A model generated the notes under the pieces. The model saw only the letters and a list, made by a program, of their open reading frames with translations. It was not told the DNA's origin and searched no databases. From the IMG/VR virus record IMGVR_UViG_3300042514_000542, positions 142,591 through 206,590 of that record: a stretch of DNA of 64,000 bases; one strand, given 5' to 3'. Of the stretch, positions 8,962 through 58,327 are shown piece by piece; position 1 is the first letter of the stretch, and every line of letters begins with the position of its first letter. Made by a program: the position numbers and the translations under genes.

Positions 8962-9309
8962 ATGTCTTCTTCTTCTTCTTCGTCTTCCAGTTCTTCCACA
9001 CCTCCAGTAACATTACCACCACCGGTAACACCACCACCGGTAAATTTTGAGTGTACTCCGTGTTATCCACCTATTCCATCCACACCAGAATTCCCACCGA
9101 ATTTTACACTACCGACAACCAAAACAGCACAGCCAGAATTTATTATAACAACACCACCCCCACCAGTTAACCCTCTAACTATAAGTATAAACATAACTAC
9201 TACTTCAACTACAACAACTCAAATAGTGACACCACCAGTGACACTACCACCACTGATAACCCCATCAGTGAAAGAATGTAATGATGGTTGCAATGCTCTA
9301 AATTTTTAG
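8962..9309 (+). CDS. Mucin-like Ser/Thr/Pro-rich late protein
   Basis: Poly-Ser start, repeated (T)PPVT(L)PP, Thr runs, two Cys pairs; TAAATA 6 nt upstream. Confidence 0.6.
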   Translation: MSSSSSSSSSSSTPPVTLPPPVTPPPVNFECTPCYPPIPSTPEFPPNFTLPTTKTAQPEFIITTPPPPVNPLTISINITTTSTTTTQIVTPPVTLPPLITPSVKECNDGCNALNF

Positions 9310-9319
9310 TAATTACTCC

Positions 9320-10150
9320 ATGAGGAATCTAACAATTGGAATGGCAACGCATGATGATTTCGATGGGTTGTATTTCACAATTCAAAATATACGTTTGAAT
9401 CATAAAGAAATCTTAGATAAGATAGAATTTGTTATTATTGATAATAATCCAAATAGTAAACATGGTAAGAGTATTCGAAACTTTATGCAATGGATAAAGG
9501 AACCCGTCCAATATCTTCCCTTCACTAAGTTTCAATCCACTACAGTTAAAAACAAAGTATTCGAACTGGCAGATACGCCATATGTTCTATGTATAGATTC
9601 CCATGTTCTATTAGAACAAGGTTCTTTGAAAAAACTCATAAATTTCTACGAAAGTGGTAAAGATTATGGTAATTTACTACAAGGTCCATTAGTATATGAT
9701 GATATGGAAAATATTAGCAGTCACTTCGATCTAACTAAATGGGGTGGCAATATGTGGGGTCAATGGGGGTCAGATGATAGGGCTAAAAATCCAAATAATG
9801 AACCCTTTGAAATCCCAGCACAAGGTATGGGTCTTTTTTCCTGCCGTAAAGATGCTTGGTTAGGTTTTAATAAGGAATTTAGAGGATTTGGTGGTGAAGA
9901 AGGTTATATTCACGAAAAATATCGTAAAAATGGTAAAAAAGTTATATGTTTACCCTTTTTACGATGGGTTCATAGGTTTGATCGACCAAATGGAACCACG
10001 TATCCAAACATTTTGGAGGATAGGTTTCGAAATTATTACATAGGGTTTAAAGAACTTGGTCTTGATACCACAGAACTCTTTGAAAACTTTCCAGAGTTTT
10101 CTAATACCGAAAATCTCAATAAATTAGACTTAGAAATATCCAAATTTTAG
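9320..10150 (+). CDS. GT2-like glycosyltransferase
   Basis: LTIGMAT, VIIDNN, CIDSH (DxD-like), GFNKEFRGFGGEE. Confidence 0.85.
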   Translation: MRNLTIGMATHDDFDGLYFTIQNIRLNHKEILDKIEFVIIDNNPNSKHGKSIRNFMQWIKEPVQYLPFTKFQSTTVKNKVFELADTPYVLCIDSHVLLEQGSLKKLINFYESGKDYGNLLQGPLVYDDMENISSHFDLTKWGGNMWGQWGSDDRAKNPNNEPFEIPAQGMGLFSCRKDAWLGFNKEFRGFGGEEGYIHEKYRKNGKKVICLPFLRWVHRFDRPNGTTYPNILEDRFRNYYIGFKELGLDTTELFENFPEFSNTENLNKLDLEISKF

Positions 10151-10377
10151 ATATTTCCCAAGGAAGCTTCACACTCTACATCGTGTAACATAGCTGGAAA
10201 TCTATCTTTGATGTATGATTCGATGGCTAATGGCTTAATCATATCAATAGGATCGACATTTAGATCCTTCGCCTTCTCTTCAATGAAGTGAAATGCCTCA
10301 ACCAAACACATCCATCTGGTAAATTCACCAGTTGTCATTTCTTCCACTATCCCATCACCTCGTTTTATTGTAATCAT
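10147..10377 (-). CDS. Hypothetical protein
   Basis: 76-aa ORF in a minus-strand gene run. Confidence 0.6.
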   Translation of the reverse strand: MITIKRGDGIVEEMTTGEFTRWMCLVEAFHFIEEKAKDLNVDPIDMIKPLAIESYIKDRFPAMLHDVECEASLGNI

Positions 10378-10403
10378 AAGTCCCTATTGTAGTTCGGTTT
10401 TAA

Positions 10404-18927: not shown

Positions 18928-19008
18928 GTATATATTTAGTAATCCGAGTCGTTTCTTCTTCAATTAAATTTGTTAATAGGTCAATAAGATCTGATGACGG
19001 GTCGTAAT

Positions 19009-21413: not shown

Positions 21414-21571
21414 TTACGAACAGCTAATATAATTTTACCACCTCTAGTCAACTCAATTGCTATATGTTTTATATCTTTACTATAATAATTAGGATGGATT
21501 AATATCATTTTATCGTTATAAATTACATATTGATAACCCACCTCTTCGATAATCTCATATTCTTTTATCAT
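21410..21571 (-). CDS. Small hypothetical protein
   Basis: ATGA-coupled between the GT and the helicase. Confidence 0.45.
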   Translation of the reverse strand: MIKEYEIIEEVGYQYVIYNDKMILIHPNYYSKDIKHIAIELTRGGKIILAVRK

Positions 21572-22266
21572 TTGTATTTTTCTAAAAAGTATTTTTCTCC
21601 AGCTTTCCACTCATCGGTGAACTCTCGCAACCCCGGAGACTCATGTGTGATCAAAATATCACCAACGCCAACTCTACCACCCTTTAAATGGAAGTCAAGC
21701 GATGCCAGCAAGTCATAAAAATGGAATTTTGATGGACAATCCTCATCAAACCTCATTTCTTCCATAGCCTTTCTATTAAGTGCCATGAAAACACCATCAA
21801 TCATAACAACTTTGTGTGGATATTTTCCAAAAGTTGATGCAGGTTTTACCACTTCTTCATATTGACATCCATAAAAAGCAGTATCGTTTTTAACTAAATG
21901 TTGAACACATCCATGTAAGTGACCACCTTGGAATCCTCCACCCATCAAATGCCACAAAGCAGGACTCTTAAGTTCAATTTTGGATGCTCCAGCAACCCCA
22001 ACCAAATCATAATCATCAAATAACTTCTCAAGTTTTGGAATTGGGTCTTCCTCAAGGATAACATCGTCGTGAACTAGAATTAAACAGTCTCTATTCTCTT
22101 CCAATGCTTCGTCAATAGCCTGATTATATCTTTTAGCTAAGGATTCTGTATTATTTAAATGTGTCTGGCAAAGTAATTCATATCTCCAAATACTTTCATT
22201 CAATGTATAGTCTTTAAATTTGGATTTTTGAGTGCAACACACCACTTTTGCGTTTTTGATCTCCAT
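21568..22266 (-). CDS. GT-A glycosyltransferase (StrF/GT2-like)
   Basis: SLAKRYN, LVHDDV, VGVAG, IDGVFMA, FHFYD, HES; start reassigned to MEIKN. Confidence 0.8.
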   Translation of the reverse strand: MEIKNAKVVCCTQKSKFKDYTLNESIWRYELLCQTHLNNTESLAKRYNQAIDEALEENRDCLILVHDDVILEEDPIPKLEKLFDDYDLVGVAGASKIELKSPALWHLMGGGFQGGHLHGCVQHLVKNDTAFYGCQYEEVVKPASTFGKYPHKVVMIDGVFMALNRKAMEEMRFDEDCPSKFHFYDLLASLDFHLKGGRVGVGDILITHESPGLREFTDEWKAGEKYFLEKYK

Positions 22267-22271
22267 ATCTG

Positions 22272-22299
22272 ACAGTATCACAGATAAATCCACAGTCAA
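22272..22299 (-). promoter_or_regulatory. Sigma70-type promoter for the GT-helicase operon
   Basis: TTGACT-N16-TACTGT with extended TG, 5 nt before ATG. Confidence 0.55.
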
Positions 22300-30616: not shown

Positions 30617-31825
30617 TTAAGGGTTCCACTTTTTCAAAAATGGTCGTTTATCAGATCCCCATTCCGTATTGAACGCTTCAAGATAACATCCAATGTTCTG
30701 TGGATGTTCTAGGAATCGTGTTTCTCCAAGTTTTCTAAGTTCTGGAACCAGACTATAATATTTAGAACGGTTTTTCCAATTAGTCATCATCTCGATTTTA
30801 TGTTCTAATTCGTCAGCAGTCTTAAACCTAAGCATATCGGGAGCGGAACTATATGTAACCATGTCTTGGCATAGACATGGGATTCCAAGTTGTGCCGCTT
30901 CGATAAATTTGATGTCGGATTTACTACGATTGAATGGAATATCCATCAATGGGGCAATAAACAGTTGTGCATTTAATGATGCTAGGAAATTAGGATAGTT
31001 TAAGAATGATTGCCATCCATGAACCTCGATTTCCTTGGAATCAACGTAAGGTTTTAGTGCTGGTGGATATGCACCAATAAATACAAACTGGTATTTGTGT
31101 CGATTGTCAATGATAAATTCATTAACGTGGGTAAAATCATCCTGACCACCAGCTAAGTTCTTAACATCAAAGTGTGCGCCAGATCCAGCATAGATAATAC
31201 GAGGCTTTTTCTTGAATGTTTCAAAATTATTACAGATTTTTCTATAATCATATTGATGACCACTCCACCAATGAGGCATAAAGTTAGGAACCACTGTTAT
31301 TTTTTGTTGTCCAGTCTTCTCAATATATAAATCTTTCATATATTGGCATGTAACTGTAACCTCATCAACCATATTGATCATATCGATACAGTTTTGGCGA
31401 ATCTCTTCGGTGTCGAATCCATGTTTTGAAGCATTGTGATCAGGAATTTCCTCGCGAAACACAACGTCATCCACCTCATAAATCAATTTAAATCCCATTT
31501 CTGGTTGAATTGATTTCAGATAAGCAATAAAATCTTTTTGATGGGATGCTGCTTGCCTTTGCAGAGTTACACTTTTAATATTATGGTAGAAACCCTTCTC
31601 TAAGACCATCTTAGTGATGTCAACAGAATCACCATAACCACTCATATTGATGTGATTTGTGATAAAAGATCTACGGAACTGTGCGCAGCCATCCCTTCCT
31701 GCAAGAAAATTGATATAACGATTTTCTAGTTGTGGAGGCATTTCCACTCTAGGTTGCTTTACATAAGTATTGCCACCATAAGGAGATTTTGGAAATGGGC
31801 TTGCGAACGGACTATTCTGAAACAT
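30617..31825 (-). CDS. GT-B fold glycosyltransferase
   Basis: YEVDD, VTVT, VVPN, YAGSGAH, APLMDIPFNRSKSDIKFIE. Confidence 0.85.
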   Translation of the reverse strand: MFQNSPFASPFPKSPYGGNTYVKQPRVEMPPQLENRYINFLAGRDGCAQFRRSFITNHINMSGYGDSVDITKMVLEKGFYHNIKSVTLQRQAASHQKDFIAYLKSIQPEMGFKLIYEVDDVVFREEIPDHNASKHGFDTEEIRQNCIDMINMVDEVTVTCQYMKDLYIEKTGQQKITVVPNFMPHWWSGHQYDYRKICNNFETFKKKPRIIYAGSGAHFDVKNLAGGQDDFTHVNEFIIDNRHKYQFVFIGAYPPALKPYVDSKEIEVHGWQSFLNYPNFLASLNAQLFIAPLMDIPFNRSKSDIKFIEAAQLGIPCLCQDMVTYSSAPDMLRFKTADELEHKIEMMTNWKNRSKYYSLVPELRKLGETRFLEHPQNIGCYLEAFNTEWGSDKRPFLKKWNP

Positions 31826-43294: not shown

Positions 43295-43322
43295 TTGACA
43301 AATTAAAAATAAATGTTAAATT
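43295..43322 (+). promoter_or_regulatory. Sigma70-type promoter heading the kinase/GT operon
   Basis: TTGACA-N16-TAAATT with extended TG, 6 nt before ATG 43329. Confidence 0.55.
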
Positions 43323-43328
43323 ATTAAC

Positions 43329-44057
43329 ATGAGGATAGCAATATCAGGCACGGCAAATTCCGGTAAAACTACATTAATCGATGCATTTAAAAATCGATGG
43401 CCGATGTATACAACACCATCGAAGACATATAGAGATGTAATTAAGGAGAATAATTTAGAACATTCATCCAATACAAATGACGATTCACAATTGTTAATTC
43501 TAAATTGGATGATGGAGGAGCAGAAAAAGTATAATAAAGATTCGTATGTCATCTATGATAGATGTCCATGGGATAATTTAGCATATACATTACAGGGAAA
43601 TGCATTAGATAAAATTTCAGATACAGTTACAGCCGCAACTATTTCCTTTGTTAAGGAATCCATGAAGGATCTTGATATTATTTTCTGGCTGAAGTATAAT
43701 CCAGCTATTAAAGTCGTAGAAGATGGGCTTAGAGATGCTAATGAAGCATATATCAAACAAACAGATCAGGTATTCCAAGGATTATTTGATCAGTATATGG
43801 ATAATCTTGAAGAGGACGTATTCTACCCGAAAGATGACTGCCCTGCAATCGTTTGTATCGATGAACACTTTTCTACAGTTGATGATAGATTAATGTTTAT
43901 TGGTGAATTTTTAGACCGTAAAGGTGATTTGATTGATGGGGAGAGTATGCTATCCGAAGAAAACCTGTCGATCTTAGAAGGAATTTTAGGTGATCAAGGT
44001 CGTGAAAAGGAAAACGAAGATAGAATTAATAAAATCATTAAAGAATTTAAGAAATGA
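43329..44057 (+). CDS. P-loop nucleotide kinase-like protein (AAA_28/NadR type)
   Basis: IAISGTANSGKTT, YDRCPWDNLAYT. Confidence 0.8.
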   Translation: MRIAISGTANSGKTTLIDAFKNRWPMYTTPSKTYRDVIKENNLEHSSNTNDDSQLLILNWMMEEQKKYNKDSYVIYDRCPWDNLAYTLQGNALDKISDTVTAATISFVKESMKDLDIIFWLKYNPAIKVVEDGLRDANEAYIKQTDQVFQGLFDQYMDNLEEDVFYPKDDCPAIVCIDEHFSTVDDRLMFIGEFLDRKGDLIDGESMLSEENLSILEGILGDQGREKENEDRINKIIKEFKK

Positions 44058-44881
44058 TTAACAAAAAAGAAACCATTGGTGTTGGTATTATAACCAAAGA
44101 CCGTCAACACCTTTTAAAAACTCTCATAAAAAGTCTCAAAGAGTGCGATTGGGATGAAATTGTCATTATAAACGATGGAAATAAAATTGAAGTAGATGGG
44201 TGGAATCATTGGTGTTATCATTATATTCAGAGAAATGATACAAATTTGGGGGTTGGTATATCAAAAAATAAAGCATTGAAATATCTTCTAGATATGGGAT
44301 GTGATCATATCTTTTTAATTGAAGATGACATCTTTATTAAAGATGGATCAGTTTTTGAAAAATATATTGAGACATCTAAAAAGACTGGTATTCAACATTT
44401 AAATTTCTCTCAACATGGGAGAATGAACAAAAAATGGCCAAATACAACACCAAATCCAAGAGTAGTCATAGATTATGGTGATGTTAAATTACCACTATAC
44501 CCTCATTGTGTTGGTGCATTCTCATATTATTCTAGAAAATGTTTGGAGATTGCTGGACTTATGGACGAGCGATATTTCAATGCTTGTGAACACGTTGATC
44601 ACACTTTAGAAATTATCAAAGCTGGGATACATCCACCATTTTGGTATTTTGCCGATATTGAAAATTCTTGGGAATATTTGGGTGATGAGGAATGGTCTAT
44701 TGAAAAATCAACCATATCATCTAATCCAAATCATAAACAAATGATGAAAGATGCCGATGTAATTTTTAGAGAGAAACATGGTTGCGTTCCGGGTGAGATT
44801 AAACTACTTGGAATTGATGAGGTTGGTAAAACTTTAAAACGTATTAAAAATGGGTATGGATCTGACAATAGTAACATGTAA
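44054..44881 (+). CDS. GT2 glycosyltransferase
   Basis: IGVGIIT..R, IINDG, NLGVGISKN, LIEDD, EH. Confidence 0.88.
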   Translation: MINKKETIGVGIITKDRQHLLKTLIKSLKECDWDEIVIINDGNKIEVDGWNHWCYHYIQRNDTNLGVGISKNKALKYLLDMGCDHIFLIEDDIFIKDGSVFEKYIETSKKTGIQHLNFSQHGRMNKKWPNTTPNPRVVIDYGDVKLPLYPHCVGAFSYYSRKCLEIAGLMDERYFNACEHVDHTLEIIKAGIHPPFWYFADIENSWEYLGDEEWSIEKSTISSNPNHKQMMKDADVIFREKHGCVPGEIKLLGIDEVGKTLKRIKNGYGSDNSNM

Positions 44882-45557
44882 TTATGATACACCTGATTTA
44901 ATTACCAATTTAATGGTGTCTCTCGCTAATACTTGTGATGATATTCCTTATATGTTGGTTATAAGCACAGGAAAATATCCGCTTTTAAACCCAATGAAAC
45001 CGTTATGGCACAACCATAACATTCCACACACATCTCATGGAGATGCTGTTAATGAGGCTTTCAGTTTAGTAAAAACTAGATATATGTTGTTGGTCGATTC
45101 TGATGTTTTATTTCTCAAGGACTTCTATGAGCCATATGAAAAATTCAAAGAGGGTAGATTTGCATTGATGGGTGAAGTTGTTGGTGATCGTGGCGGAAAG
45201 TTAATATATCCTAGAGTTAATCCATGGTTCTGTTTTATTGATTTGGAGCAACTCAAAGAACACAACATTAAATTCTATGACCATTACCGAACCAAAGAAA
45301 TCAAATCTGAAAAGATATATGATATTGGATCTACAATGTTTGAGGATGTTATAAACGCTGGACTAACAATCGGCAATGCCAATATGGAAAATAAATATTT
45401 TAAACACTATGAGGGTATGTCGTGGAGGGTTCAGAAATACAACCCAAACGATGTGGATACTGACATCGATATCGGAGGAACCCACAATAACAAAGCGTTA
45501 TATGATTATGGTCTGAAAGTCAGAGAACAATATGAAAGGGATGTGGTTAAATTATGA
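44850..45557 (+). CDS. GT2-like glycosyltransferase
   Basis: LTIVTCNY, HGDAVN, LLVDSDV, YDIGS, HYEGMSW. Confidence 0.8.
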   Translation: MGMDLTIVTCNYDTPDLITNLMVSLANTCDDIPYMLVISTGKYPLLNPMKPLWHNHNIPHTSHGDAVNEAFSLVKTRYMLLVDSDVLFLKDFYEPYEKFKEGRFALMGEVVGDRGGKLIYPRVNPWFCFIDLEQLKEHNIKFYDHYRTKEIKSEKIYDIGSTMFEDVINAGLTIGNANMENKYFKHYEGMSWRVQKYNPNDVDTDIDIGGTHNNKALYDYGLKVREQYERDVVKL

Positions 45558-46303
45558 AGAATACAACATTTATTATTCACTTTAGACGAGATTGCGAGGA
45601 TAGAATTTTCAATTTAAAAACTATTTTAAAATATTTATATTCCAATAATCCTCTTGAAATAATTGTCATCAACGATGATAATGTTGTAGACCCAATCATG
45701 AAATGGGTAAAGACCGAGTATCCAACAATAAAATTGTTGTTTTGTGAAAATGAAGATGAATTTAAAAAATCTTATTGTTTTAATATGTCAGCATTACAAT
45801 CAACTGGCGATGTGTTATGTTTTTATGATGTTGATGTTTTAGTATCTCAAGCACAATTAGAAGAATCTCAAAATTTAATTTTGAGTGGACAAGCGGATCA
45901 CGTATACCCATTTAATGGAATTTTTATAGATGTTAAAAAGAAATTTTTTCCTATGTTTATTGACACATTTAATTTTGTCACCCTAAACAATGAGGTAACA
46001 GATACAACTTTAGGATTTTACAATGGAAATATAAATATTATATCTGATAAATCACCAGGAGGATGTAATTTAATATCAAAAAAAGCATTTCAAAAAATTG
46101 GGGGATATGATGAAAATTTCATTGGGTGGGGGTTTGAAGATACCGATTTCAGGGAAAGATCCAAGAAGAAAAATAATGTTCGGTATTTAGAGGGGGATAA
46201 GTATTTATATCATTTAGAACACATAACCCATTGTGATCAAGATAGATCGCAACAACCATATTATGGTAACAATTACAAACAATTTATACTAAATCAAAAA
46301 TGA
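45554..46303 (+). CDS. GT2/GT7-C galactosyltransferase-like protein
   Basis: FYDVD, GGYDENFIGWGFEDTDF, HLEH. Confidence 0.88.
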   Translation: MKNTTFIIHFRRDCEDRIFNLKTILKYLYSNNPLEIIVINDDNVVDPIMKWVKTEYPTIKLLFCENEDEFKKSYCFNMSALQSTGDVLCFYDVDVLVSQAQLEESQNLILSGQADHVYPFNGIFIDVKKKFFPMFIDTFNFVTLNNEVTDTTLGFYNGNINIISDKSPGGCNLISKKAFQKIGGYDENFIGWGFEDTDFRERSKKKNNVRYLEGDKYLYHLEHITHCDQDRSQQPYYGNNYKQFILNQK

Positions 46304-47571
46304 ACACTAAAACATATGTACAAATAGGTGCGAATGTAGGAAACGATGATTTTTATGCGAAAGTTAAAAACTTAACTGAACCATCGATAATACATTTGAT
46401 AGAACCGAACATTACCTTACATTCAGAACTACTTAAATGTTATGAAGAGTTAAGTAAATTGCATAATATTAGTGTTCATGGTTATGGAATTTCAAATAAA
46501 TCGGAACATGTATGTTTAAATCTATATGATAACTCTGGATTATCATCGATTATAAATAGGAAATCATATAGTCATAAAACAACAGCTATCGATATTGTAT
46601 GTAAGTCATTCGATGTTTTTTGCGAGGATAATCAAATATCACATATAGATTATTTATGTATAGATACGGAAGGATTGGATTATGAGATTTTAAATAGTAT
46701 TGACATAAACAGAATCAATATAGATGTTATTGAATTTGAAGAATGGCCGTATGAAAACGATGACGATAATGACAATTATAAGACTGGTGTGACATTTTTA
46801 CAATGTGAAGTTTTACCTAAATATAAAAATTATATCCTCGATAAACTTATTATCGGAGATATGCCAAGTTTTAGGTTAACAAAAAAGAAACTTTCTATTG
46901 CATTTACAACATTTAATAGTAGTCAATTCATTGTAGATGCATTATCTAATATTATATATAATGATATAGTTGATGAAATTATTATATCAGATGATAATTC
47001 GGATGATATAACAACTCTTAAAGAAATAATAAATAATTTCAACTGTCCAAAAATAAAATTATTCACACATGAATATCATTTAAATGCTAGTGTAAATAAA
47101 TATAAAGCTGTAATGTATTGTAAAAACGAATATGTTGCGTTAATAGATAGTGATAATGTTATTGATAATAGATACATTGATTTGATAGATTTTAAATATG
47201 ATGGTATACAAATGCCATCATATGCTAGTCCGAATTTCGATTATAGTAGTTTAGTTGGTGAGTATGACTTAGAGAGTATTAAATGGTTGATGAATAGTCC
47301 AAAACGAGATTTAACTTTACAATGTCTGAATACAGGGAATTATATTTTTCCAAAGTTTAGATATTTAGAAATAGCTAATAATGCATTAGAATTTAAATCA
47401 TATGGGGTTGATGTTTTTTATATATCTTGTTTATGGTTGCATTCTAATTATAATATAAAAATACTCAAGGGGTTAGAATATTTTCATAGATTAAGACCGG
47501 ATAGTTTGTGGATGAAAACCTCGAACGATAGTAATATAGTGATGGGGGAACTGATCAATAAATATTTATGA
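46300..47571 (+). CDS. FkbM methyltransferase-GT2 fusion
   Basis: N-terminal QIGANVG, IEPN, IDTEGLD; C-terminal LSIAFTTFN, ISDDNS, LIDSDN. Confidence 0.85.
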   Translation: MNTKTYVQIGANVGNDDFYAKVKNLTEPSIIHLIEPNITLHSELLKCYEELSKLHNISVHGYGISNKSEHVCLNLYDNSGLSSIINRKSYSHKTTAIDIVCKSFDVFCEDNQISHIDYLCIDTEGLDYEILNSIDINRINIDVIEFEEWPYENDDDNDNYKTGVTFLQCEVLPKYKNYILDKLIIGDMPSFRLTKKKLSIAFTTFNSSQFIVDALSNIIYNDIVDEIIISDDNSDDITTLKEIINNFNCPKIKLFTHEYHLNASVNKYKAVMYCKNEYVALIDSDNVIDNRYIDLIDFKYDGIQMPSYASPNFDYSSLVGEYDLESIKWLMNSPKRDLTLQCLNTGNYIFPKFRYLEIANNALEFKSYGVDVFYISCLWLHSNYNIKILKGLEYFHRLRPDSLWMKTSNDSNIVMGELINKYL

Positions 47572-47622: not shown

Positions 47623-48237
47623 ATGTTAATAGACTTCAATATATTAAAAGATAAGTATGGTATCACCACACATGGAGTGATACATGTTGGTATGCATAAA
47701 GCAGAGGAATATCCAATTTATAAAAACTGTGGGGTGGAAGAAATTATTTTTGTAGAGGCTAACCGAGATTTGGCGCATGGGTGGGTGAATGATGATCCTC
47801 ATTGTCATGTAGTCCATGCTGCGGTTTCAGATAAAGAAGAAATTATTAAATTCCACATCACCAATAATGGTGAAAGTTCCTCAATTTTAGAGTTGGGTGA
47901 TCATGCTAAGATATATCCACATATTGTAAATGTTGATACTGTTGAAATGAAGACCACCACATTAGATACGATTATTGAAAGGGTTGGTGTTTATAAGTTC
48001 GTATGGAATGTTTTAAATTTGGACATTCAGGGAGCAGAACTCAAGGCTATGAAGGGGCTAACCAATTGGGATAGTATTGAAGCCGTCTTCACTGAAGTAA
48101 ACTATAGAGAGATGTATAAGGGGTGTGGATTGGAACCGGAAGTTACCAAGTTTTTGGAGGATAAGGGATTTGAAAAGGTTGAAGAAGATGATACTGGATG
48201 TGGGTGGGGGGACGCACTATATATTAAAAAGAAATGA
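47623..48237 (+). CDS. FkbM family methyltransferase
   Basis: IHVGMHKAEE, VEAN, SSSIL, LDIQGAEL, WGDALY. Confidence 0.9.
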   Translation: MLIDFNILKDKYGITTHGVIHVGMHKAEEYPIYKNCGVEEIIFVEANRDLAHGWVNDDPHCHVVHAAVSDKEEIIKFHITNNGESSSILELGDHAKIYPHIVNVDTVEMKTTTLDTIIERVGVYKFVWNVLNLDIQGAELKAMKGLTNWDSIEAVFTEVNYREMYKGCGLEPEVTKFLEDKGFEKVEEDDTGCGWGDALYIKKK

Positions 48238-48992
48238 AAAATAAATGTTACGTTGATGTTAGTGGCGGTATTGGAAATCAGCTATTTAAGGTGGCTAATG
48301 GATATGCTTATAGCCAAAGGTATAATTTAGAGTTGGTTATAGATCCAACTAATTGGACAGCATCTCAAGGAACTAGTCCAATTCTATACCAATCCAATAT
48401 ATTTAAAAATTTTAACATTATCCCTAGAGGTGAAACTACAGAAATTCATGAAATATCCTTTAATTTTATGGAACTACCGAAATATGATTGGTCATATGGT
48501 GATATATCTCTACATGGTGGTTTTCAATCTCTGAAATATTTTGAAGATTATAAGGATGAGTTTATCAGTCTACTATGTTTACCGAAGGTAGATACATCAT
48601 TTATATCATCGGATGCTAATATAGCGTTTCATATTAGATTTGGTGATTATCAACATTATCCCAAAATATTTGGAGATATTACTAACTATTTCCATAAACA
48701 ATTTGAGAAGTTTTCTCCAGATTTTCAGATTAATGTATTTTCGGATTCTCCAGAATTAGTATTGAATAAATTCCGAAACTATAAATTTAATCTAATAAAA
48801 ACATCATCCGAGTTGAATGACTTGACTTTACTTTCTCTACATGATAGGATAGTTTGTAGTAACTCGACATTCTCTTGGTGGGCATCATTACTGGGTGCGA
48901 AAAAAGAATTGATTATCGTACCCGATAAATGGTTATTAGATCGAGATTGTAAAGATATATATTACGAAGGAATGATAAAAAATGAGTTTTAA
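48234..48992 (+). CDS. GT11 alpha-1,2-fucosyltransferase-like protein
   Basis: GGIGNQLF, FQSLKYF, HIRFGDY, FSD, NSTFSWW. Confidence 0.9.
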   Translation: MKNKCYVDVSGGIGNQLFKVANGYAYSQRYNLELVIDPTNWTASQGTSPILYQSNIFKNFNIIPRGETTEIHEISFNFMELPKYDWSYGDISLHGGFQSLKYFEDYKDEFISLLCLPKVDTSFISSDANIAFHIRFGDYQHYPKIFGDITNYFHKQFEKFSPDFQINVFSDSPELVLNKFRNYKFNLIKTSSELNDLTLLSLHDRIVCSNSTFSWWASLLGAKKELIIVPDKWLLDRDCKDIYYEGMIKNEF

Positions 48993-49329
48993 AGCATCGA
49001 ACTACCTAATTTTCGACCAGTCTAAAAACGAACTGGATAATGAATTACTTGAGGAATTTAATCCTTGGATGACAACCAAAACATTCTCATTTTATAATGA
49101 TGGGGAATTCATTCATTATATCAATGATTTTTTGAATGGTAATACCAACATCTTCAAAACTAAAGAAGAACAATTTAAATATTATGAGAATGTCATTCCC
49201 AGACAGAAATTTAAAAGAATAACTTATATTAAGAAATCTAAAACCGAAAAAGTCGAAGAGTATCCAATTCCAGAATTTTACTCTAGGCGCGAGATCGACT
49301 TATTTGAAAATATAAATATCATCACATGA
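48982..49329 (+). CDS. gp62: Clamp-loader small subunit (gp62-like)
   Basis: FNPWMTTKTFSF...IN..LN...EQFKYY..VIPRQKFKRITYIKK...YSRRE resembles the gp62 pattern. Confidence 0.6.
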   Translation: MSFKASNYLIFDQSKNELDNELLEEFNPWMTTKTFSFYNDGEFIHYINDFLNGNTNIFKTKEEQFKYYENVIPRQKFKRITYIKKSKTEKVEEYPIPEFYSRREIDLFENINIIT

Positions 49330-50003
49330 TAACTCTAATTACACCAACTGGCGGAAGACCTAAATCATTTGCATTGCTAGAAAAATATATGAGTAGGCAG
49401 TCAATGCCTTTCGATCAATGGATCGTAGTTGACGATTTTGAAACACCAACTCCATGTAATTTAGGACAAATGGTTATTCGTAGGCAACCCTTTTGGAAAC
49501 CTGGTGAAATGACCTTACCTTTAAATATATTAACCGCACTACCATGGGTTAGAGGGGAATATATATTGATCGTTGAGGATGATGACTGGTATAATCCTGA
49601 TTATATTAGAATAATGGTTGACCGATTGCAAAATTATGATCTAGTTGGTGGGGGTATTGCCCACTATTATAATGTGTCAACATTTCGTCATATAATACAC
49701 GGAAATACTCTAAATGCTAGTTTATGTGAAACCGGATTTAGACGAAGTGTTATGGATTCTATCGAGTCATGTATTCAATCTCACATCAATGAAATGTATG
49801 TTGATGGATATATATGGGATTTACCATTGAATAAATTAGTGTTCAATGACTCGGTTAATTGTATTGGTATAAAAGGTATGCCGGGTAGAGGGGGGCTTGG
49901 TCATGGACATCTAATTGATTTTGGATATCTAGACTCAACACCCTTCGATACATTACAAAAATGGATTGGGGATGATGTCAAATATTATAAAGATTTGCGA
50001 TGA
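49326..50003 (+). CDS. GT2-like glycosyltransferase
   Basis: ITLITPTGGRP, WIVVDD, IVEDDDWY. Confidence 0.85.
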   Translation: MITLITPTGGRPKSFALLEKYMSRQSMPFDQWIVVDDFETPTPCNLGQMVIRRQPFWKPGEMTLPLNILTALPWVRGEYILIVEDDDWYNPDYIRIMVDRLQNYDLVGGGIAHYYNVSTFRHIIHGNTLNASLCETGFRRSVMDSIESCIQSHINEMYVDGYIWDLPLNKLVFNDSVNCIGIKGMPGRGGLGHGHLIDFGYLDSTPFDTLQKWIGDDVKYYKDLR

Positions 50004-50018
50004 TAGTTTACGTAACTA

Positions 50019-50774
50019 TTATCTTTTTTGTAAAAAATCTAGTAGTAATTGATTGTAATCAATATTCCATTTCGGAGTTAGTGTAATATCTCCGGTGGGT
50101 ATCTTTCCTTTTATTCTTAGTTCTTCTATATGTCTTGAGTGCCTGACTATAATACTCTCTCTATCTGCTGTGTCTGCACCTTGACCAGACATATGATAAC
50201 TTCTATCAGCCCACAAATACATCCAAGAAACCTCCTCATCTGGAGGCTCTGCGAGAACCACCCTACATTGATATTCATTCTTTAGTTTTACGACAAATGA
50301 CATATCATATCCAGCATTTTCTAATTCATGTTTACCTGATTTTTCCCATATATTTTTAGTATAAACAATACCAGAATTACCCAAACTATGGATCGCATCA
50401 ACCTTTTTATAATTTACGGCTGCACCCTTTTGCCAATGTAATAAATCATATCCAGGAAAATATTTATTGATATTTTCCAAATGGTTTGGTAGTGCGATAT
50501 CATCATCGTCCCAAACCGCTATCGTGTCATATTTACAGTTATCGACCGCAAAATTCTCCTTTTCACCAATAGTTTCGAATGTTCTATTAAGATTAATTAT
50601 TTTAACATTTGGATGGTCGAAATATAATTTTTGCTCTGGGTAATCATTCACGATTACCATCTCTCGCTCACCATCATATTCCTGATTTAAAAAGCTGAAT
50701 AAAGATTCCTCAAGTAAGTCCACTCTACCGTATGTAATACACTTACATGAAATAGGTATTTTATCATTCATCAT
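50019..50774 (-). CDS. GT2 glycosyltransferase (late promoter)
   Basis: CITYGR, FLNQEY, IVND, WDDDD; TAAATA 8 nt before MMNDK. Confidence 0.88.
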   Translation of the reverse strand: MMNDKIPISCKCITYGRVDLLEESLFSFLNQEYDGEREMVIVNDYPEQKLYFDHPNVKIINLNRTFETIGEKENFAVDNCKYDTIAVWDDDDIALPNHLENINKYFPGYDLLHWQKGAAVNYKKVDAIHSLGNSGIVYTKNIWEKSGKHELENAGYDMSFVVKLKNEYQCRVVLAEPPDEEVSWMYLWADRSYHMSGQGADTADRESIIVRHSRHIEELRIKGKIPTGDITLTPKWNIDYNQLLLDFLQKR

Positions 50775-50871
50775 ATCGGAGATATTTACTCGTAACAATA
50801 ATTAATCAATCTAAAATCTCTTTATTAAATCTAGTATATTGACATATAAATAAACCAAATTAAATACCACT

Positions 50872-51306: not shown

Positions 51307-51321
51307 CATTAAATAATTAAT

Positions 51322-51891: not shown

Positions 51892-51925
51892 TGTTGATTT
51901 ACACATTCCATGTTGTAATTATATT

Positions 51926-52261
51926 ATGTATCGTCTTGAAAATCAATTAAAACCATTAATGTTAGCTGATGTAGAATTTGTAATTGATGATAAAATTATC
52001 AAACGTGGGAAAATTAGGGTGTTTAATACTAAACAATTTTTCATTAAATTTCGATTAGAGAATTGTAACAATGTAAAAGATTACGAGATACCATATCCAT
52101 TTAGGGTTAAAAATGTGGATGATGGATATTTATTCGATTATTGTCTCTCAGCATTTATTCCTAATACCGAAGAGGTTTTTTGGAAAATGAAAACCATGAA
52201 CAGTGTAGACTCCTCAAAACTCCACGAAAAATATCTATTTGTGCGAAAGTTGTCTGCTTGA
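51926..52261 (+). CDS. Hypothetical protein
   Basis: Start placed at MYRLEN. Confidence 0.6.
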   Translation: MYRLENQLKPLMLADVEFVIDDKIIKRGKIRVFNTKQFFIKFRLENCNNVKDYEIPYPFRVKNVDDGYLFDYCLSAFIPNTEEVFWKMKTMNSVDSSKLHEKYLFVRKLSA

Positions 52262-52286
52262 CAAATGAGATATCCATGAGTATAAT
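52258..52286 (+). promoter_or_regulatory. Perfect sigma70 consensus promoter
   Basis: TTGACA-N17-TATAAT, 7 nt before the helicase ATG. Confidence 0.8.
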
Positions 52287-52293
52287 GGGCTAG

Positions 52294-53907: not shown

Positions 53908-55138
53908 TATGAATTTAAAAAAATATAAACGAATTAGGAAATTAGTTAACGGTTTAATGACTACAACATACGTTCCCAAAAAAGAAAATAGAAATATGAC
54001 AACCTTAAAAAAATATTTAAATCACTTTATGTGGTATGATTTATCTAACGATGATCTTTTAAACATCATTCCATCACCAGTATTCGATATCGAGTATCCT
54101 TCAAATTTTGAAACACATTTTGGTAAAATTCCAACGGTATTTTTAAAAATAGATGATAAAATTCTACCTTTGGAAAACTTCAACAAATTTCAAAAATATC
54201 TATTATCGCAAGGATTTGATTTAATGGAATGCGGGTATGAGACTTTCAAATATATTCATTTTGAAAGAAAAATACTTATTAGTGGTGATGCCACTGATAT
54301 GTCTATCGATCTTGAAGAGGATGAAGAGGATGACTATCCCAGAGGAAATCGATCAATCGAATCCGAAACTATTTATATAAATTTACTCCCAACTCTTGAA
54401 AATAAAGAGTTTATCGAAAAAGTGATGAAAAAAATCCATTCATTTCTTATTGATGTTTCGACTCAAATCGATAAGTTCTACATGATTGCTCAGGGTCAAA
54501 ATGGACTGTTTACACAGAAGACTAAATTTAAATCTATACCTGTGGAAGATGATAGATTCGATTTATTCTATGGTAGAGAATTTCCACATGAAAAAATGCA
54601 AAGGTTTGTATGGGATAAAACCGATAACCTTATGCTACTTCACGGAGATCCCGGCACAGGTAAGTCTAATTATATTAAACATCTTATAACTAGTTCTAAG
54701 AAAAAAGTTATATATATCCCACCATCTATGCTTAGTGTCATCTCCGATCCGGGATTTGTAACATTTATGATGAGTAACAAGGATAGTATTCTTCTGATTG
54801 AAGATGCCGAAGAAGTATTATCAGTGGATAGAAATTCGGCAACCAATAACCTATTAGGATTAACTGACGGATTTTTAAAAGATGCGTTGGGGCTGAAGGT
54901 TATTGCCACATTCAATTGTGATATCGGTAAAATTGACCCTGCTTTGAAAAGAAAAGGTCGTATGTATTTTGAATACAAGTTTGATAAATTAAGTGTTGAT
55001 GAGTGTAGAACATTGGCTACTCACTTAAAACTAGATAAAGAGATTAGAGATCCTATGACACTTGCGGAATTTTTTAGTGTTGAGGAAAACACAATAGAGG
55101 ATTCGTTTAAAGAACGTTTTATAGGGTTTGCGACATGA
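53900..55138 (+). CDS. AAA+ ATPase
   Basis: LLHGDPGTGKS, LLIEDAE, TFN, IDPALKRKGR, IGF tail. Confidence 0.88.
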   Translation: MNNMNLKKYKRIRKLVNGLMTTTYVPKKENRNMTTLKKYLNHFMWYDLSNDDLLNIIPSPVFDIEYPSNFETHFGKIPTVFLKIDDKILPLENFNKFQKYLLSQGFDLMECGYETFKYIHFERKILISGDATDMSIDLEEDEEDDYPRGNRSIESETIYINLLPTLENKEFIEKVMKKIHSFLIDVSTQIDKFYMIAQGQNGLFTQKTKFKSIPVEDDRFDLFYGREFPHEKMQRFVWDKTDNLMLLHGDPGTGKSNYIKHLITSSKKKVIYIPPSMLSVISDPGFVTFMMSNKDSILLIEDAEEVLSVDRNSATNNLLGLTDGFLKDALGLKVIATFNCDIGKIDPALKRKGRMYFEYKFDKLSVDECRTLATHLKLDKEIRDPMTLAEFFSVEENTIEDSFKERFIGFAT

Positions 55139-56252: not shown

Positions 56253-56312
56253 ATGGGATTATAATTTTCTACAATGGTCAGAAAATTATATATAATTAAG
56301 TTAAATAATTAT

Positions 56313-57416
56313 ATGGCAATAGATTTAGGCGATAATCCAGTGGGAATCCCCCCCACAGCAGGTGAGGCGACCCAAATTAGAACGGTTTTAGGGTTGGGTA
56401 ATGTTAACAATACATCTGATCTAGATAAACCGATCTCGACAGCCACACTATCGGCACTTAATTTAAAAGAGACTCCCGCTGGAGCAGCCGCGCAAATCGC
56501 AGCATCCGCCCTTACTGACGCACAAGTGGGCAACCAAGTCGGTAACGAGCTTGTGGCTACTTTTTCAGCGTTGGCCGCTGTATCCACACTAAATCCCGGC
56601 TGTCTGGTGTTGGCCACTTCTCGTCCGAATGCTGCTAACGTCATAATCAGGACATCAACTGGCTACGCTCGACCTATTCTCGCTGCCACTGGAGCATTGT
56701 CCACTCAGGTTGGGACAGGGGTTGTTGGCGCACAGTTAACAATCCCCATTGCTGCTGGTGCTGCCATGCGTGCAATGTCGGTAATCAGTGTTGCGAGCGG
56801 TGGCTCTGTCCGTAGTGGTAACATCACTGACATTAATATTTCTGATGTGGGCTTACACAGTATGCCCACATCGCACTTAACAGCTTTGACTGCGCTGACT
56901 GTTATTAACAGTAGGTTGCCCAGCTTTGACGGGTCTGGGCTTACTTCGCTCACAATCCTAGCCTTAAACAGCAACAATCAACTCCGCTCCTTTACCAAGG
57001 GAACAGGATTAGAATCACTGTTGAGCCTAACGTTAAATTCTAATAGACTGACAACGTTTTCGGGAGTGGGACTTAGCGTATTAAGAAATCTCTTTTTAAA
57101 TAATAACCAACTCACAACTTTTGACGCTACTGGATTAGGTGAGCTTAGGACATTAAACGTTTCAAACAACACAACCCTGAATAGCTTTGTTTTGTCCAGT
57201 GTCCCAACCCTAGTTTCTCTTCGTAATGAGGATATTTCGACTTTTGCAGTGGTTGCAAATGGTTGCTCTTTAAGTGCGCAAGCAATCAATGACTTCTTCA
57301 CTGCACTCCCGCCAGCAACAAACGGAGCAGCAACTCTAGTCTTCAACGGAAACCCAGGAAGTGCAACTGCCAATGCATCCATTGCCACCTCCAAAGGTTA
57401 CACTGTATCCCTCTAA
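56313..57416 (+). CDS. Fibre-anchored leucine-rich-repeat protein
   Basis: LGLGNVNNTSDLDKPISTA fibre repeat; at least four LxxLxLxxN repeats; elevated GC; TAAATA 5 nt before MAIDLG. Confidence 0.7.
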   Translation: MAIDLGDNPVGIPPTAGEATQIRTVLGLGNVNNTSDLDKPISTATLSALNLKETPAGAAAQIAASALTDAQVGNQVGNELVATFSALAAVSTLNPGCLVLATSRPNAANVIIRTSTGYARPILAATGALSTQVGTGVVGAQLTIPIAAGAAMRAMSVISVASGGSVRSGNITDINISDVGLHSMPTSHLTALTALTVINSRLPSFDGSGLTSLTILALNSNNQLRSFTKGTGLESLLSLTLNSNRLTTFSGVGLSVLRNLFLNNNQLTTFDATGLGELRTLNVSNNTTLNSFVLSSVPTLVSLRNEDISTFAVVANGCSLSAQAINDFFTALPPATNGAATLVFNGNPGSATANASIATSKGYTVSL

Positions 57417-57427
57417 AATAAATCATC

Positions 57428-58327
57428 ATGCAAACTAAAATCACCATCGCGCTTGGAGCGTCACACGCCGCAGAGGTATCCAGACTCTCCACCTCCATTC
57501 CTGAGTTGCTGATCGTAGATGAGGAAAACCCTCTTTATGAAGAGCGACATGATGATGTCACGGTCAATGCGCTACTCACCAAGTCTGGCTTTGGCAAGTT
57601 CCTACCAGAAGACAGAGATGGAGCAGTTTTCCTTTGCGACACCGACCTCCAGCCTGTGGGTGGCGGAAACCCATTCGACACCTTCCCCGATATGGGTGAT
57701 GCCGACATCGCCTTTGTTGCATATCCCGGACGATTCTTTTTCCCACCTACCGAAAGCTACCAAGCAGCGAGCTACGCTGTCCTTGGGAAAAAGCTCAACT
57801 CAGGAATGGTCTGGTTCAAGAATCACGAAACAGCAAAAGCTATCTCTGCTGCATGGGAGGCAAAATATCTAGAGGATATTTCCGAGGGTGGTGCTATGGC
57901 TGACATGACTCATAAAAATGATGAGGTATCGCTGATGGCGGTGCTTGTTTCTGGCGACTGGAACTACCACTGGCTGGAGCAAGTCTGGAATAACCAATGG
58001 GAACCTAGCGAGAACGACATCATTCGTCACTCGCACGATGTCCCGACTACATCCGCGCCACAAAGCGAACCAACGCCTGTCCCTGAATCCCTCGCCAACT
58101 GGCGCGTTAAGGCGGTTCTTGACATACAGGGACTTACATCAACTGTGGATGCTGCCATAGATGCTATGGTAGACAGTAATGAAAAAATTATTATTTCAAG
58201 AGCATGGAACGGTAATGGTGATGTCCTTCGTCACTCCCCAACCGTTAATTCTTTCATGGCTATTCTCGGCCTCACCGATGCTCAGGTGGATGATATGTTC
58301 CGTTTGGCTGATACTTTCAATCCGTAA
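57428..58327 (+). CDS. GT-A (GT8-like) domain fused to a tail-fibre-assembly-like C-terminal domain
   Basis: FLCDTD, LNSGMVWF, DEVSL, WN, IRH; then VPESLANWRVKAVL...W...LGLTDAQVDDMFRLA. Confidence 0.6.
   Translation: MQTKITIALGASHAAEVSRLSTSIPELLIVDEENPLYEERHDDVTVNALLTKSGFGKFLPEDRDGAVFLCDTDLQPVGGGNPFDTFPDMGDADIAFVAYPGRFFFPPTESYQAASYAVLGKKLNSGMVWFKNHETAKAISAAWEAKYLEDISEGGAMADMTHKNDEVSLMAVLVSGDWNYHWLEQVWNNQWEPSENDIIRHSHDVPTTSAPQSEPTPVPESLANWRVKAVLDIQGLTSTVDAAIDAMVDSNEKIIISRAWNGNGDVLRHSPTVNSFMAILGLTDAQVDDMFRLADTFNP

Follow-up and report, generated by a model that had tools for sequence, protein, structure and literature searches.

Mucin-type O-glycosylation in animals and some protists is initiated by polypeptide N-acetylgalactosaminyltransferases (ppGalNAc-Ts, CAZy family GT27), in which a GT-A catalytic domain is combined with a ricin-type lectin domain and a signal anchor in a Golgi context. 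In mycobacteriophages of the Che8 type, which are siphoviruses of Actinobacteria, two or three phage-encoded glycosyltransferases (GTs) are thought to decorate the C-terminal parts of capsid and tail-tube subunits, giving a glycan shield on the particle (Freeman et al. 2023, as cited in PMC12619734). Aquatic T4-like cyanomyoviruses such as P-SSM2 (24 'LPS genes', PMC1079782), S-SCSM1 and S-SCSM2R (13 GTs, PMC12801897) carry 13 or more GTs, including GT11 and GT2 enzymes, together with sugar epimerases and Rml genes in hyperplastic regions, and these clusters are read as host-surface or DNA modifiers. Chloroviruses and giant viruses, which are eukaryotic viruses, glycosylate structural proteins in the cytoplasm with virus-encoded, host-independent machinery that includes GT and sugar-methyltransferase fusions (for example PBCV-1 A064R, a GT-GT-methyltransferase) and nucleotide-sugar enzymes such as those of the rhamnose pathway, the glycans being N-linked in chloroviruses (PMC9614988). 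Finally, phage T4 encodes two DNA glucosyltransferases, and sugar-hypermodification clusters act on the DNA of other phages.

We compared these systems to a 64-kb stretch (the window), which forms the end of a 206.6-kb lake-water contig from an uncultured freshwater phage of a deep-branching T4-like lineage with no cultured relative. A first-pass annotation had reported 11 GT domains and two FkbM methyltransferase domains in the window, and we found all 13 at the positions given, so that this observation is confirmed. Seven GTs pass the curated Pfam cut-offs, three fall below them but are supported by PHROG, AF2 or Atlas, and one, at 57428, rests on leads only. None of the GTs has a predicted membrane segment. 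The annotation's interpretation, that the phage builds a complex, capped glycan which probably coats the virion, is only partly supported. Our analysis supports a large phage-encoded glycan-building toolkit far beyond the two glucosyltransferases of T4 and a good acceptor candidate, whereas it is not shown that the glycan is complex and capped, that it coats the virion, or that the main GT cluster acts on the same acceptor.

The principal new result concerns the GT at 9320..10150 (+), which passes the Pfam cut-off as a GT2 (35.6 bits, 1e-8) and is a core gene of the lineage, with 281 IMG/VR relatives at 57-81% identity and 2,679 protein clusters. Its AF2 model (pLDDT 92.9, pTM 0.91) has ppGalNAc-Ts as all top 50 PDB matches in Foldseek, including T1, T2, T4, T7, T10, T12, PGANT9 and Toxoplasma T3 (E 9e-14, TMq 0.74, about 300 aligned columns). 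Asp-12, Asp-13, the D93-x-H95 motif, G189-F-G-x-E193-E194 and His-218 are invariant among the relatives, as is an FGGEEGYIHEK block. In an alignment to TarP, the DSH sequence corresponds to the DSD of that enzyme. As in ppGalNAc-Ts, a D-x-H motif occupies the metal-binding DxD position, a GGE-type motif is found in the second half of the domain, and an invariant histidine follows. The similarity is, however, at the fold level, as a profile search against PDB sequences found only TarP at 5e-3 and Pfam PF02709 was not detected, and GT-A folds resemble one another (489 Foldseek hits at E <= 1e-3). The phage protein also differs from ppGalNAc-Ts in that it contains only 276 residues, lacks a lectin domain and a membrane anchor, would act in the bacterial cytoplasm, and has its candidate acceptor encoded next to it. 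A tblastn search of 50,697 GenBank phage records returned no homologue of this GT.

The candidate acceptor is a mucin-like ORF of 115 amino acids located immediately upstream (8962..9309, +), which had been missed by the JGI gene caller but had been noted in the first-pass annotation. It consists of 23% Pro, 19% Thr and 13% Ser, and has a Ser12 start, Pro/Thr-rich tracts, a CxxC pair and the C-terminal motif ECNDGCNALNF. In 62 of 80 related loci, one to three ORFs directly upstream of the GT end in a Pro/poly-Thr tract plus a conserved C-terminal C-x(n)-C-N-x-L-x-F motif. These 76 ORFs are all on the strand of the GT, and the last one ends 10-15 nt before it, whereas none of the other roughly 4,580 ORFs in these loci, and no other ORF in the window, has the motif. 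The ORFs are 100-2,000 amino acids long and their N-terminal parts are variable and unalignable, while the tail, the motif and the GT are kept. The remaining 18 of 80 loci contain the GT without a recognizable tail ORF, and the enzyme may thus have other acceptors. The tail-bearing ORFs follow fibre-gene homologues with almost no intergenic gap and close the tail-fibre operon. In the window, this operon contains five tail-fibre-like genes (3643..8862, +; 588, 273, 340, 286 and 239 amino acids), which have no Pfam hits, are rich in Ser, Asn and Gly, and are syntenic with 30-54% identity in relatives, with baseplate genes located upstream on the contig. The large tail-bearing proteins nevertheless have no recognizable fibre domains, and the acceptor candidate in our window is a bare 115-residue peptide with no evident way into the virion. 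A TAAATA box (8950..8955, +) lies 6 nt before its start codon and represents a candidate late-type promoter core with no -35 TTGACA. Boxes ending 5-7 nt before the start codon are found at 17 of 75 genes (0.56 expected, P about 1e-20), including the portal, gp15, gp13 and fibre genes. The only indels seen between lake populations across positions 6500-10150 are in-frame changes of 3 and 18 nt inside the mucin-like ORF.

We next analyzed an 8-gene GT island (44054-50798), which sits in a fixed slot behind a conserved promoter. The sigma70-type promoter (TTGACA-16-TAAATT; 43295..43322, +) ends 7 nt before a thymidylate-kinase-like P-loop kinase gene (43329..44057, +; PHROG 2107, 2e-19; Pfam AAA_28/dNK; 55-62% identity in relatives), the conserved first gene of the operon. 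The same promoter architecture precedes gp43, the helicase at 52294 and other genes, and is conserved before the kinase gene in the related loci L019 and L020. The first GT is a semi-conserved GT-A enzyme (44054..44881, +) assigned by PHROG 2456 (1e-24), with a Pfam GT2 match below cut-off (2.8e-4) and 43-45% identity in related loci L013, L016 and L018. The following GT-A enzyme (44850..45557, +) has the weakest sequence signal in the island (Pfam GT2, 7.6e-4, below cut-off) but matches viral GT2 clusters in Atlas (0.99; structure TM 0.87). It is followed by a beta-1,4-Gal/GalNAc-transferase-like protein (45554..46303, +; Glyco_tranf_2_2, 57.3 bits, 2.3e-15; Glyco_transf_7C, 44.7 bits, 1.1e-11), whose closest PDB sequences are chondroitin sulfate synthase 3 (1e-5) and beta-4-GalT1. 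An FkbM-type methyltransferase is fused to a GT2 domain at 46300..47571 (+; Pfam 48.5 bits, 1.4e-12 and 40.2 bits, 4.2e-10; NCBIfam fkbM_fam, 9e-16), and no homologue of this fusion was found by tblastn among the same GenBank phage records. A stand-alone FkbM-type methyltransferase (47623..48237, +; 46.0 bits, 8.1e-12; NCBIfam 6e-12) precedes a GT11 enzyme of the alpha-1,2-fucosyltransferase family (48234..48992, +; PF01531, 37.7 bits, 1.9e-9), which has homologues at 47-76% identity in related loci L011, L012 and L016. A 115-residue protein with no family hit in our searches (48982..49329, +) is conserved at 49-66% identity in seven of the eight related loci compared, and in relatives marks the 3' edge of the variable island. 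Two further GT2 enzymes are found at 49326..50003 (+; 32.6 bits, 9.3e-8), preceded by a canonical TATAAATA box at 49311-49318, and on the opposite strand at 50019..50798 (-; 33.6 bits, 4.6e-8). The order PhoH, kinase, first GT, variable genes, 115-residue gene and helicase is kept in relatives, but the gene content differs in L019 and L020, which carry GT2s with an FkbM, or GT11, GT7C, GT17 and Methyltransf_24.

The remaining GTs are scattered over the window. A GT-A enzyme (21568..22299, -; Glyco_tranf_2_5, PF13712, 51.7 bits, 1.2e-13) is located between the gp41 helicase and a 663-residue protein of unknown function. It shows a weak rhamnosyltransferase hit (1e-4) and has 13 close relatives in IMG/VR. 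A second core enzyme (30617..31825, -) lies between gp46 and gp43, falls below the Pfam cut-off, but matches PHROG 7162 (3e-21) and has 169 IMG/VR relatives at 53-81% identity. Its AF2 model (pLDDT 87) is a GT-B fold (GT4-like, retaining type) with BshA, PimB' and MshA as top Foldseek hits and no T4 AGT or BGT in the top 50. The first-pass annotation had found no nucleotide-sugar synthesis genes and inferred that donors come from the host or from elsewhere in the genome. The first point holds for the window itself, but an RmlA-like (TIGR01207, 9e-73) and an RmlD-like gene are located only 2.3-3.9 kb upstream on the same contig.

Taken together, we favor, with moderate confidence, a two-tiered phage-borne, cytoplasmic protein O-glycosylation system, in which an initiating enzyme is probably paired with its acceptor and a variable island builds the glycan, so that these phages probably sugar-coat part of their own particle. 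In the first and best supported tier, the GT at 9320 would transfer a first sugar from a UDP-sugar onto Thr/Ser residues of the Pro/Thr-rich tail encoded immediately upstream, with the C-terminal cysteine-containing motif inferred to serve as a docking or recognition element. In the second tier, which is inferred, the other soluble GTs, the two FkbM methyltransferase domains and the RmlA/RmlD-like dTDP-sugar genes would extend and O-methylate the glycan. As the content of the island differs between related phages, we expect it to give strain-specific glycans on a virion-exposed protein. Our data establish the domains, the fold similarity, the conserved catalytic-type residues, the conserved synteny of GT and acceptor candidate, the variability of the island and the promoter types. 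In contrast, the acceptor, the sugar, incorporation into the virion, and the action of the island on the same chain are inferred in the absence of any biochemical or proteomic evidence. Mycobacteriophage virion glycosylation provides a precedent, but here the host phylum and the phage type are different, and we find an aquatic T4-like myovirus with a poly-Thr tail and Cys motif in the fibre operon, a ppGalNAc-T-like enzyme, about 11 GT domains, methyltransferases and dTDP-sugar genes. The chlorovirus machinery shares GT-methyltransferase fusions and nucleotide-sugar enzymes with our locus but has no detectable sequence relationship to it, and the candidate linkage in our bacterial system is O-linked to Thr/Ser.

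An alternative, which we consider possible but less likely, is that the island, the scattered GTs and the RmlA/RmlD-like genes act early in infection on lipid-linked host glycans (LPS O-antigen, capsule or S-layer glycan) and thereby change the cell surface, for example to block superinfection or to stop progeny from re-adsorbing to lysed cells, as proposed for the cyanophage 'LPS genes'. The similar gene sets in P-SSM2 and S-SCSM2R, weak best NCBIfam hits to WcaA, TuaG, HpsE, HpsN and PglI, dTDP-sugar genes typical of O-antigen loci, and an island variability resembling that of O-antigen or capsule loci are consistent with this view. The conserved early-type (sigma70-like) promoter of the island likewise fits a host-envelope or DNA target at least as well as a virion protein. 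However, the cyanophage interpretation is itself untested, and no acceptor-like ORF has been reported with those clusters. We found no initiating phosphoglycosyl transferase, flippase, ABC exporter, polymerase or ligase in the window and the 25 kb upstream and no membrane segment in any GT, and host-envelope remodelling does not explain the conserved pairing of the ppGalNAc-T-like enzyme with the Pro/poly-Thr tail in the fibre operon.

It is also conceivable, although doubtful, that this pairing reflects only conserved gene order. The tail would then be an unglycosylated flexible linker or an assembly/docking element of a fibre protein, with the two conserved cysteines next to the C terminus possibly being the functional element, and the GT would modify another virion protein, a small molecule or a conserved cysteine, as in glycocin-type S-glycosylation. 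The 18 loci without a tail ORF, the promiscuity of GT-A folds in Foldseek and the lack of a sequence-level link to GalNAc-Ts allow for this reading. Yet the tail, the motif and the GT stay together while the rest of the upstream protein varies twenty-fold in length, the motif occurs nowhere else in the 80 loci or the window, and the best structural matches are specifically the enzymes that glycosylate Pro/Thr-rich tracts. DNA hypermodification, in which some of the GTs, for example the core GT-B enzyme at 30617 or those of the island, would glycosylate hydroxylated or hydroxymethylated pyrimidines in phage DNA to evade restriction, and for which one may cite phage GTs related to LPS and teichoic-acid enzymes that place mono- to trisaccharides on 5hmC (10.1101/2023.12.21.572611), poly-arabinosyl 5-hydroxycytosine in T4 relatives (PMC13326640), the location of the GT at 30617 among replication genes much like T4 alpha-gt, the dNMP-kinase-like gene heading the island and its early-type promoter, appears very unlikely, as no thymidylate-synthase-type hydroxylase or hydroxymethylase, cytosine methyltransferase or TET-type dioxygenase was found in the 89 kb inspected (contig positions 117,251-206,590, 43% of the contig, which does not establish absence from the genome), the model of 30617 does not match AGT or BGT, and 11 GT domains plus two sugar-type methyltransferases far exceed the 1-3 transferases of known DNA pathways.

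Two further acceptor candidates proposed in the first-pass annotation were not supported. The putative GT-chaperone fusion (57428..58327, +) has no Pfam, NCBIfam or PDB hit, and only Atlas leads (0.91, TM about 0.6) suggest a GT8/Nucleotid_trans-like GT-A domain for residues 1-210. This segment is followed by a Pro/Thr/Ser linker and a C-terminal domain matching only PHROG 6034 (8e-15), a family with no known function, and a chaperone assignment is therefore not supported. The gene is strain-specific and absent from all eight related loci compared, and where a locus covers this stretch, gp15 is followed directly by the portal gene. The Ser-rich fibres are likewise not supported as specific acceptors, because the ORFs at 5432-8862 contain 12-16% Ser, which is ordinary for fibres, and the very Ser-rich ORFs at 62778 and 63366 (-) are shadows of a coiled-coil gene on the + strand.

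The window comprises the last 64,000 nt of a 206,590-bp metagenomic contig (IMGVR_UViG_3300042514_000542, also JGI Ga0453074_0000014), such that window position equals contig position minus 142,590. The runs that hold this phage are DNA metagenomes, mostly from lake water or other freshwater. It is a T4-like myovirus, with genes for portal gp20, gp13 and gp15, a gp41-type helicase, UvsX and UvsW, gp46, gp32, a family-B polymerase, and PhoH. It is far from anything cultured: gp43 is about 30% identical to cyanophage gp43, a megablast search with positions 43000-51000 found nothing, and tblastn searches with the 789-aa fibre protein, the FkbM-GT2 fusion, and the GT at 9320 found no match in 50,697 phage records. 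We considered whether the "Moraphage" paper (PMC12619734) describes this lineage, but it deals with a different, non-T4-like group. The portion of the contig newly reached by extending our inspection upstream to position 117,251 contains sheath, tube, and terminase genes. A tRNA scan of the window found none.

All 11 glycosyltransferase (GT) domains and both FkbM domains reported in the first-pass annotation are present where it placed them. The ORFs starting at 9320, 21568, 45554, 46300 (FkbM plus GT2), 47623 (FkbM), 48234 (GT11), 49326, and 50019(-) pass Pfam's curated cut-offs. The ORF at 44054 matches a PHROG glycosyltransferase family (1e-24), the one at 30617 a PHROG at 3e-21 together with a confident GT-B model, and the one at 44850 is supported by Atlas feature and structure matches. 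For 57428 we obtained only language-model and structure leads to GT8/Nucleotid_trans, covering its first ~210 residues. No GT has a predicted membrane segment. The interpretation of these genes as a system that builds a glycan, probably on the virion, was supported in part. A proposed chaperone fusion in 57428 is unsupported, because its C-terminal 90 residues have no PDB hit and match only a PHROG of unknown function. The very Ser-rich minus-strand ORFs at 62778-63356 and 63366-63686 are shadows of a large plus-strand coiled-coil gene (62320-64000), which is cut by the contig end and is homologous in position to the 888-1,221-aa gene after gp13 in relatives. The absence of nucleotide-sugar genes holds for the window itself. 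However, an RmlA-like glucose-1-phosphate thymidylyltransferase gene (TIGR01207, 9e-73) and an RmlD-like reductase gene are found about 2.3-3.9 kb upstream of the window start (contig 138,732-140,320; 2500-3234(-) and 3231-4088(-) of the contig stretch L006), next to the gp44 clamp loader, with no RmlB or RmlC seen nearby.

We next analyzed the GT at 9320-10150, which is not an accessory gene. A search of IMG/VR returned 281 related stretches at 57-81% identity, and a protein search found 2,679 clusters at E <= 1e-5, all of them metagenomic and some from Tara Oceans. In 62 of the 80 related loci that we examined, the ORF that ends 10-15 nt before this GT finishes with a Pro/Thr-rich, often poly-Thr (T10-T20), tract, followed by a conserved C-terminal motif, C-x(2-9)-C-[N/K]-x-L-x-[F/Y/W]-stop. 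Examples are ECNDGCNALNF in the window, and CPEDEDCNNLQF and CNPYCNKLGY elsewhere. A regular-expression scan of all six frames found 76 such ORFs among 4,658 ORFs of at least 50 aa, and all 76 lie on the strand of the GT and upstream of it, with two or three in tandem in some loci. The remainder of these proteins is extremely variable, ranging from 100 to about 2,000 aa and being mostly unalignable, and a Pfam search with six large tail-bearing proteins from relatives, together with four proteins of unknown function from the window, gave no hits. They follow homologues of the fibre-like genes at 3643-8862 with almost no intergenic space. The GT and the tail ORF close the fibre operon in the window and in these 62 relatives, but that the tail-bearing proteins are virion components is inferred from their position only. 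In two relatives, the ORF directly upstream of the conserved GT (L061 4874-6004 and L077 4917-5999) is not a Pro/Thr-tail protein but a Cys-rich protein, whose C-terminus looks, by eye only, like a radical-SAM/SPASM maturase. Two further relatives, L083 and L085, have yet another inserted gene. In the window, the tail ORF is a stand-alone, mucin-like peptide of 115 aa (8962-9309) that was missed by the JGI gene caller and is preceded by a TAAATA box 6 nt before its ATG. Between lake-water populations, the only indels across 6500-10150 are located inside this ORF, at 8965 and 8998: a 3-nt deletion (one Ser codon) and an 18-nt insertion (a duplicated TPPVTL). Both are in-frame, as expected of a translated, repeat-like tract.

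An AF2 model of the GT at 9320 is confident (pLDDT 92.9, pTM 0.91), and its top 50 Foldseek matches in the PDB are all polypeptide GalNAc-transferases (E 9e-14, TMq up to 0.74, about 300 aligned columns), namely human and mouse T1, T2, T4, T7, T10, and T12, Drosophila PGANT9, and Toxoplasma T3. These enzymes use a D-x-H motif plus a later His to bind Mn2+, carry a WGGE-type Gal/GalNAc-T motif, and glycosylate Thr/Ser in Pro/Thr-rich mucin domains. In an alignment of 29 homologues of the phage protein, D12-D13, D93-S-H95, an FGGEEGYIHEK block that includes F190-G-G-E-E194, and H218 are invariant, and in the profile alignment to TarP, DSH lies on the DSD metal motif of TarP; that these residues are equivalent to those of the GalNAc-transferases is by analogy, without a residue-level structural alignment. 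The similarity does not extend to the sequence level. Only PF00535 was detected, over residues 6-165, and not PF02709; phmmer found no link to solved structures; and the family profile searched against all PDB sequences found only TarP (5e-3) and no GalNAc-transferase at E <= 1. An hhalign comparison of the 9320 family with 45554 was likewise insignificant. The phage protein is a single domain of 276 aa, which lacks the ricin-type lectin domain and the type II membrane anchor and has no hydrophobic segment. We therefore propose that it works like a polypeptide GalNAc-transferase, not that it is a member of GT27. No paper describing such a phage enzyme/acceptor pair was found.

We compared the remaining GTs with those of related phages. 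The GT-B at 30617 is also a lineage core gene, with 169 relatives at 53-81% identity. Its position next to gp46 suggested a homologue of the T4 alpha-glucosyltransferase, but we rejected this assignment, because it has no PDB sequence hit, gives only weak tblastn hits to Streptomyces and phAPEC8-like phage GTs, and the top 50 PDB matches of its model are retaining GT4-type enzymes (BshA, PimB', MshA) and glycogen or trehalose synthases, with no T4 AGT or BGT among them. The GT at 21568 is found in 13 close relatives. The GT8-like gene (57428-58327) and the gene for a leucine-rich-repeat protein with a fibre-like N-terminus (56274-57416) are insertions in this phage, with no homologue in any related locus compared, whereas an inserted AAA ATPase gene (53900-55138) is present in the closest relatives but absent from the more distant ones. 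In relatives, the helicase, gp15, and portal genes are contiguous, with gp15 followed directly by the portal gene. The GT island (43329-50798) occupies a fixed slot, with PhoH, a thymidylate-kinase-like gene, and the first GT as its conserved flank on one side, and a 115-aa gene (48982-49329), three small genes of 144, 189, and 126 aa (50872-52261), and a helicase on the other. These four small genes of unknown function are conserved at 45-88% identity in most relatives. The interior of the island differs: the related locus L019 has GT2, GT2, FkbM, GT2, two unknowns, DUF1796, and GT2, and L020 has an unknown, GT11, GT2_2/GT7C, GT2, an unknown, GT17, Methyltransf_24, and GT2. The closest solved relatives of 45554 are chondroitin sulfate synthase 3 and beta-4-GalT1. 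GT7-like and GT11 enzymes occur together in the window and in L020 and are both absent from L019, which fits consecutive beta-Gal/GalNAc and alpha-1,2-Fuc steps, although this is an inference.

The canonical T4 late promoter TATAAATA is not enriched in the window (13 found, 12.4 expected), and a generic promoter and terminator scan was not above shuffled sequences. We found instead two position-specific upstream architectures. TTGACA-N16/17-TAnnnT ending only 7-12 nt before the ATG precedes gp43, the 52294 helicase, three small genes, and the first gene of the island (27550-30130(-), 37937-38341(-), 39255-39289, 42246-42284, 43295-43329, 52258-52294). It is conserved before the kinase and helicase genes of relatives with 55-82% protein identity, implies near-leaderless early mRNAs, and may hint at the host group; there are no Shine-Dalgarno sequences. 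The start of gp43 (27550-30120(-)) is ambiguous: the JGI call on this contig gives 843 aa and the same gene on another contig gives 856 aa; the TTGACA promoter fits the longer form. A bare TAAATA ending 5-7 nt before the start codon is found at 17 of 75 genes (0.56 expected, P about 1e-20), for example at 1204, 5432, 8962, 55158, 58492, 60637, 42529(-), and 16422(-). These genes include the portal, gp15, gp13, two fibre genes, and the mucin-like ORF, and the GT at 49326 also has such a box, there as a full TATAAATA. The box is likely a late-promoter core shortened from that of T4. We read the two architectures as early (sigma70-type) and late classes giving near-leaderless mRNAs, inferred from sequence alone, as no RNA run was listed for this phage. 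In this view, the putative acceptor/GT pair is late, with the fibre genes, and the island is early.

Our preferred explanation, which we hold with about even confidence, is a protein O-glycosylation system. The 9320 enzyme would probably initiate glycans on the Pro/poly-Thr tails of hypervariable fibre-module proteins, the other soluble GTs, the methyltransferases, and the dTDP-sugar genes would extend and cap the glycan, and the variability of the island would give strain-specific structures. While the domains, the predicted fold similarity, and the conserved gene order are observed, this explanation rests on comparative and structural inference only, and GalNAc transfer to Ser/Thr, the tails as acceptors, and glycans on virion proteins are all inferred. 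Large GT sets in aquatic T4-like phages, phage-encoded virion glycosylation in mycobacteriophages (Freeman 2023, cited in PMC12619734), and virus-encoded GT-methyltransferase machinery in chloroviruses are already known. What is new here is the GT resembling polypeptide GalNAc-transferases, its genetically linked mucin-like putative acceptor with a conserved C-terminal motif, its breadth across an uncultured lineage, and the fixed-slot variable island.

Among the alternatives, remodelling of the host envelope survives best, although we consider it unlikely. It is the reading given to the 24 "LPS genes" of cyanophage P-SSM2 and the 13 GTs of S-SCSM2R, and it is favoured by the early-type promoter and by the RmlA- and RmlD-like genes, as the combination of GTs with nucleotide-sugar synthesis genes is a feature of O-antigen and capsule loci. 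However, no Pfam family for an initiating phosphoglycosyl transferase, flippase or ABC exporter, polymerase, or ligase is present among the genes inspected, and neither the island nor any GT has a membrane segment. Host enzymes could substitute for these, but this reading does not explain the conserved pair. Less likely still is a coincidental adjacency or another acceptor for the 9320 GT, including S-glycosylation of the conserved Cys; 18 of the 80 loci lack the tail ORF. A glycocin-type system with a SunS-like GT, a short Cys-rich precursor with a leader, and a dedicated exporter or protease is not supported, because the upstream ORFs reach 2,000 aa, no exporter is adjacent, and SunS is not among the top fold matches. 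DNA glycosylation is very unlikely, since known pathways add one to three sugars and need an enzyme that makes the hydroxylated base, and no ThyA-type hydroxymethylase or hydroxylase, or cytosine methyltransferase plus TET, was found in the 89 kb inspected (contig positions 117,251-206,590), which leaves 57% of the genome unseen.

Protein glycosylation by phage-encoded enzymes has been shown only in a few actinobacteriophages, and the large GT sets of aquatic T4-like phages have been explained, without tests, as host-LPS or DNA modifiers. The present case offers a concrete candidate pair, a small soluble GT resembling polypeptide GalNAc-transferases and a short Pro/Thr-rich peptide encoded side by side, in a GT family that spans thousands of metagenomic sequences. 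If confirmed, mucin-type O-glycosylation chemistry would exist in the bacterial virosphere, the role of at least some of the "LPS genes" of marine and freshwater myoviruses would be reassigned, and glycan-based diversification of virion surfaces would be suggested, with consequences for host range, decay, and grazing. Such an enzyme could also be a compact tool for making mucin-type glycopeptides in bacteria. A bolder reading, unlikely on present evidence but not excluded by it, is that a widespread, uncultured lineage of freshwater and marine T4-like phages performs eukaryote-style mucin-type O-glycosylation inside bacterial cells. Here, a minimal, lectin-less enzyme resembling polypeptide GalNAc-transferases would initiate glycans on poly-Thr tails of hypervariable proteins at the end of the tail-fibre module, and a hypervariable island of elongating GTs (GT7-like, GT11, GT2) and FkbM methyltransferases would build strain-specific, possibly fucosylated and O-methylated glycans. 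These phages would then carry virion "glyco-serotypes" that matter for host recognition or for protecting the particle.

Beyond the glycosylation genes, four GIY-YIG or SegE-type homing-endonuclease genes are scattered among the replication genes (16422-17180(-), 18079-18963(-), 35750-36487(-), and 38849-39292(+)), as listed in the JGI Pfam tables. An ART-PolyVal-type ADP-ribosyltransferase gene lies beside the baseplate genes upstream of the window (391-1203 of the contig stretch L008, contig about 127.2-128.1 kb).
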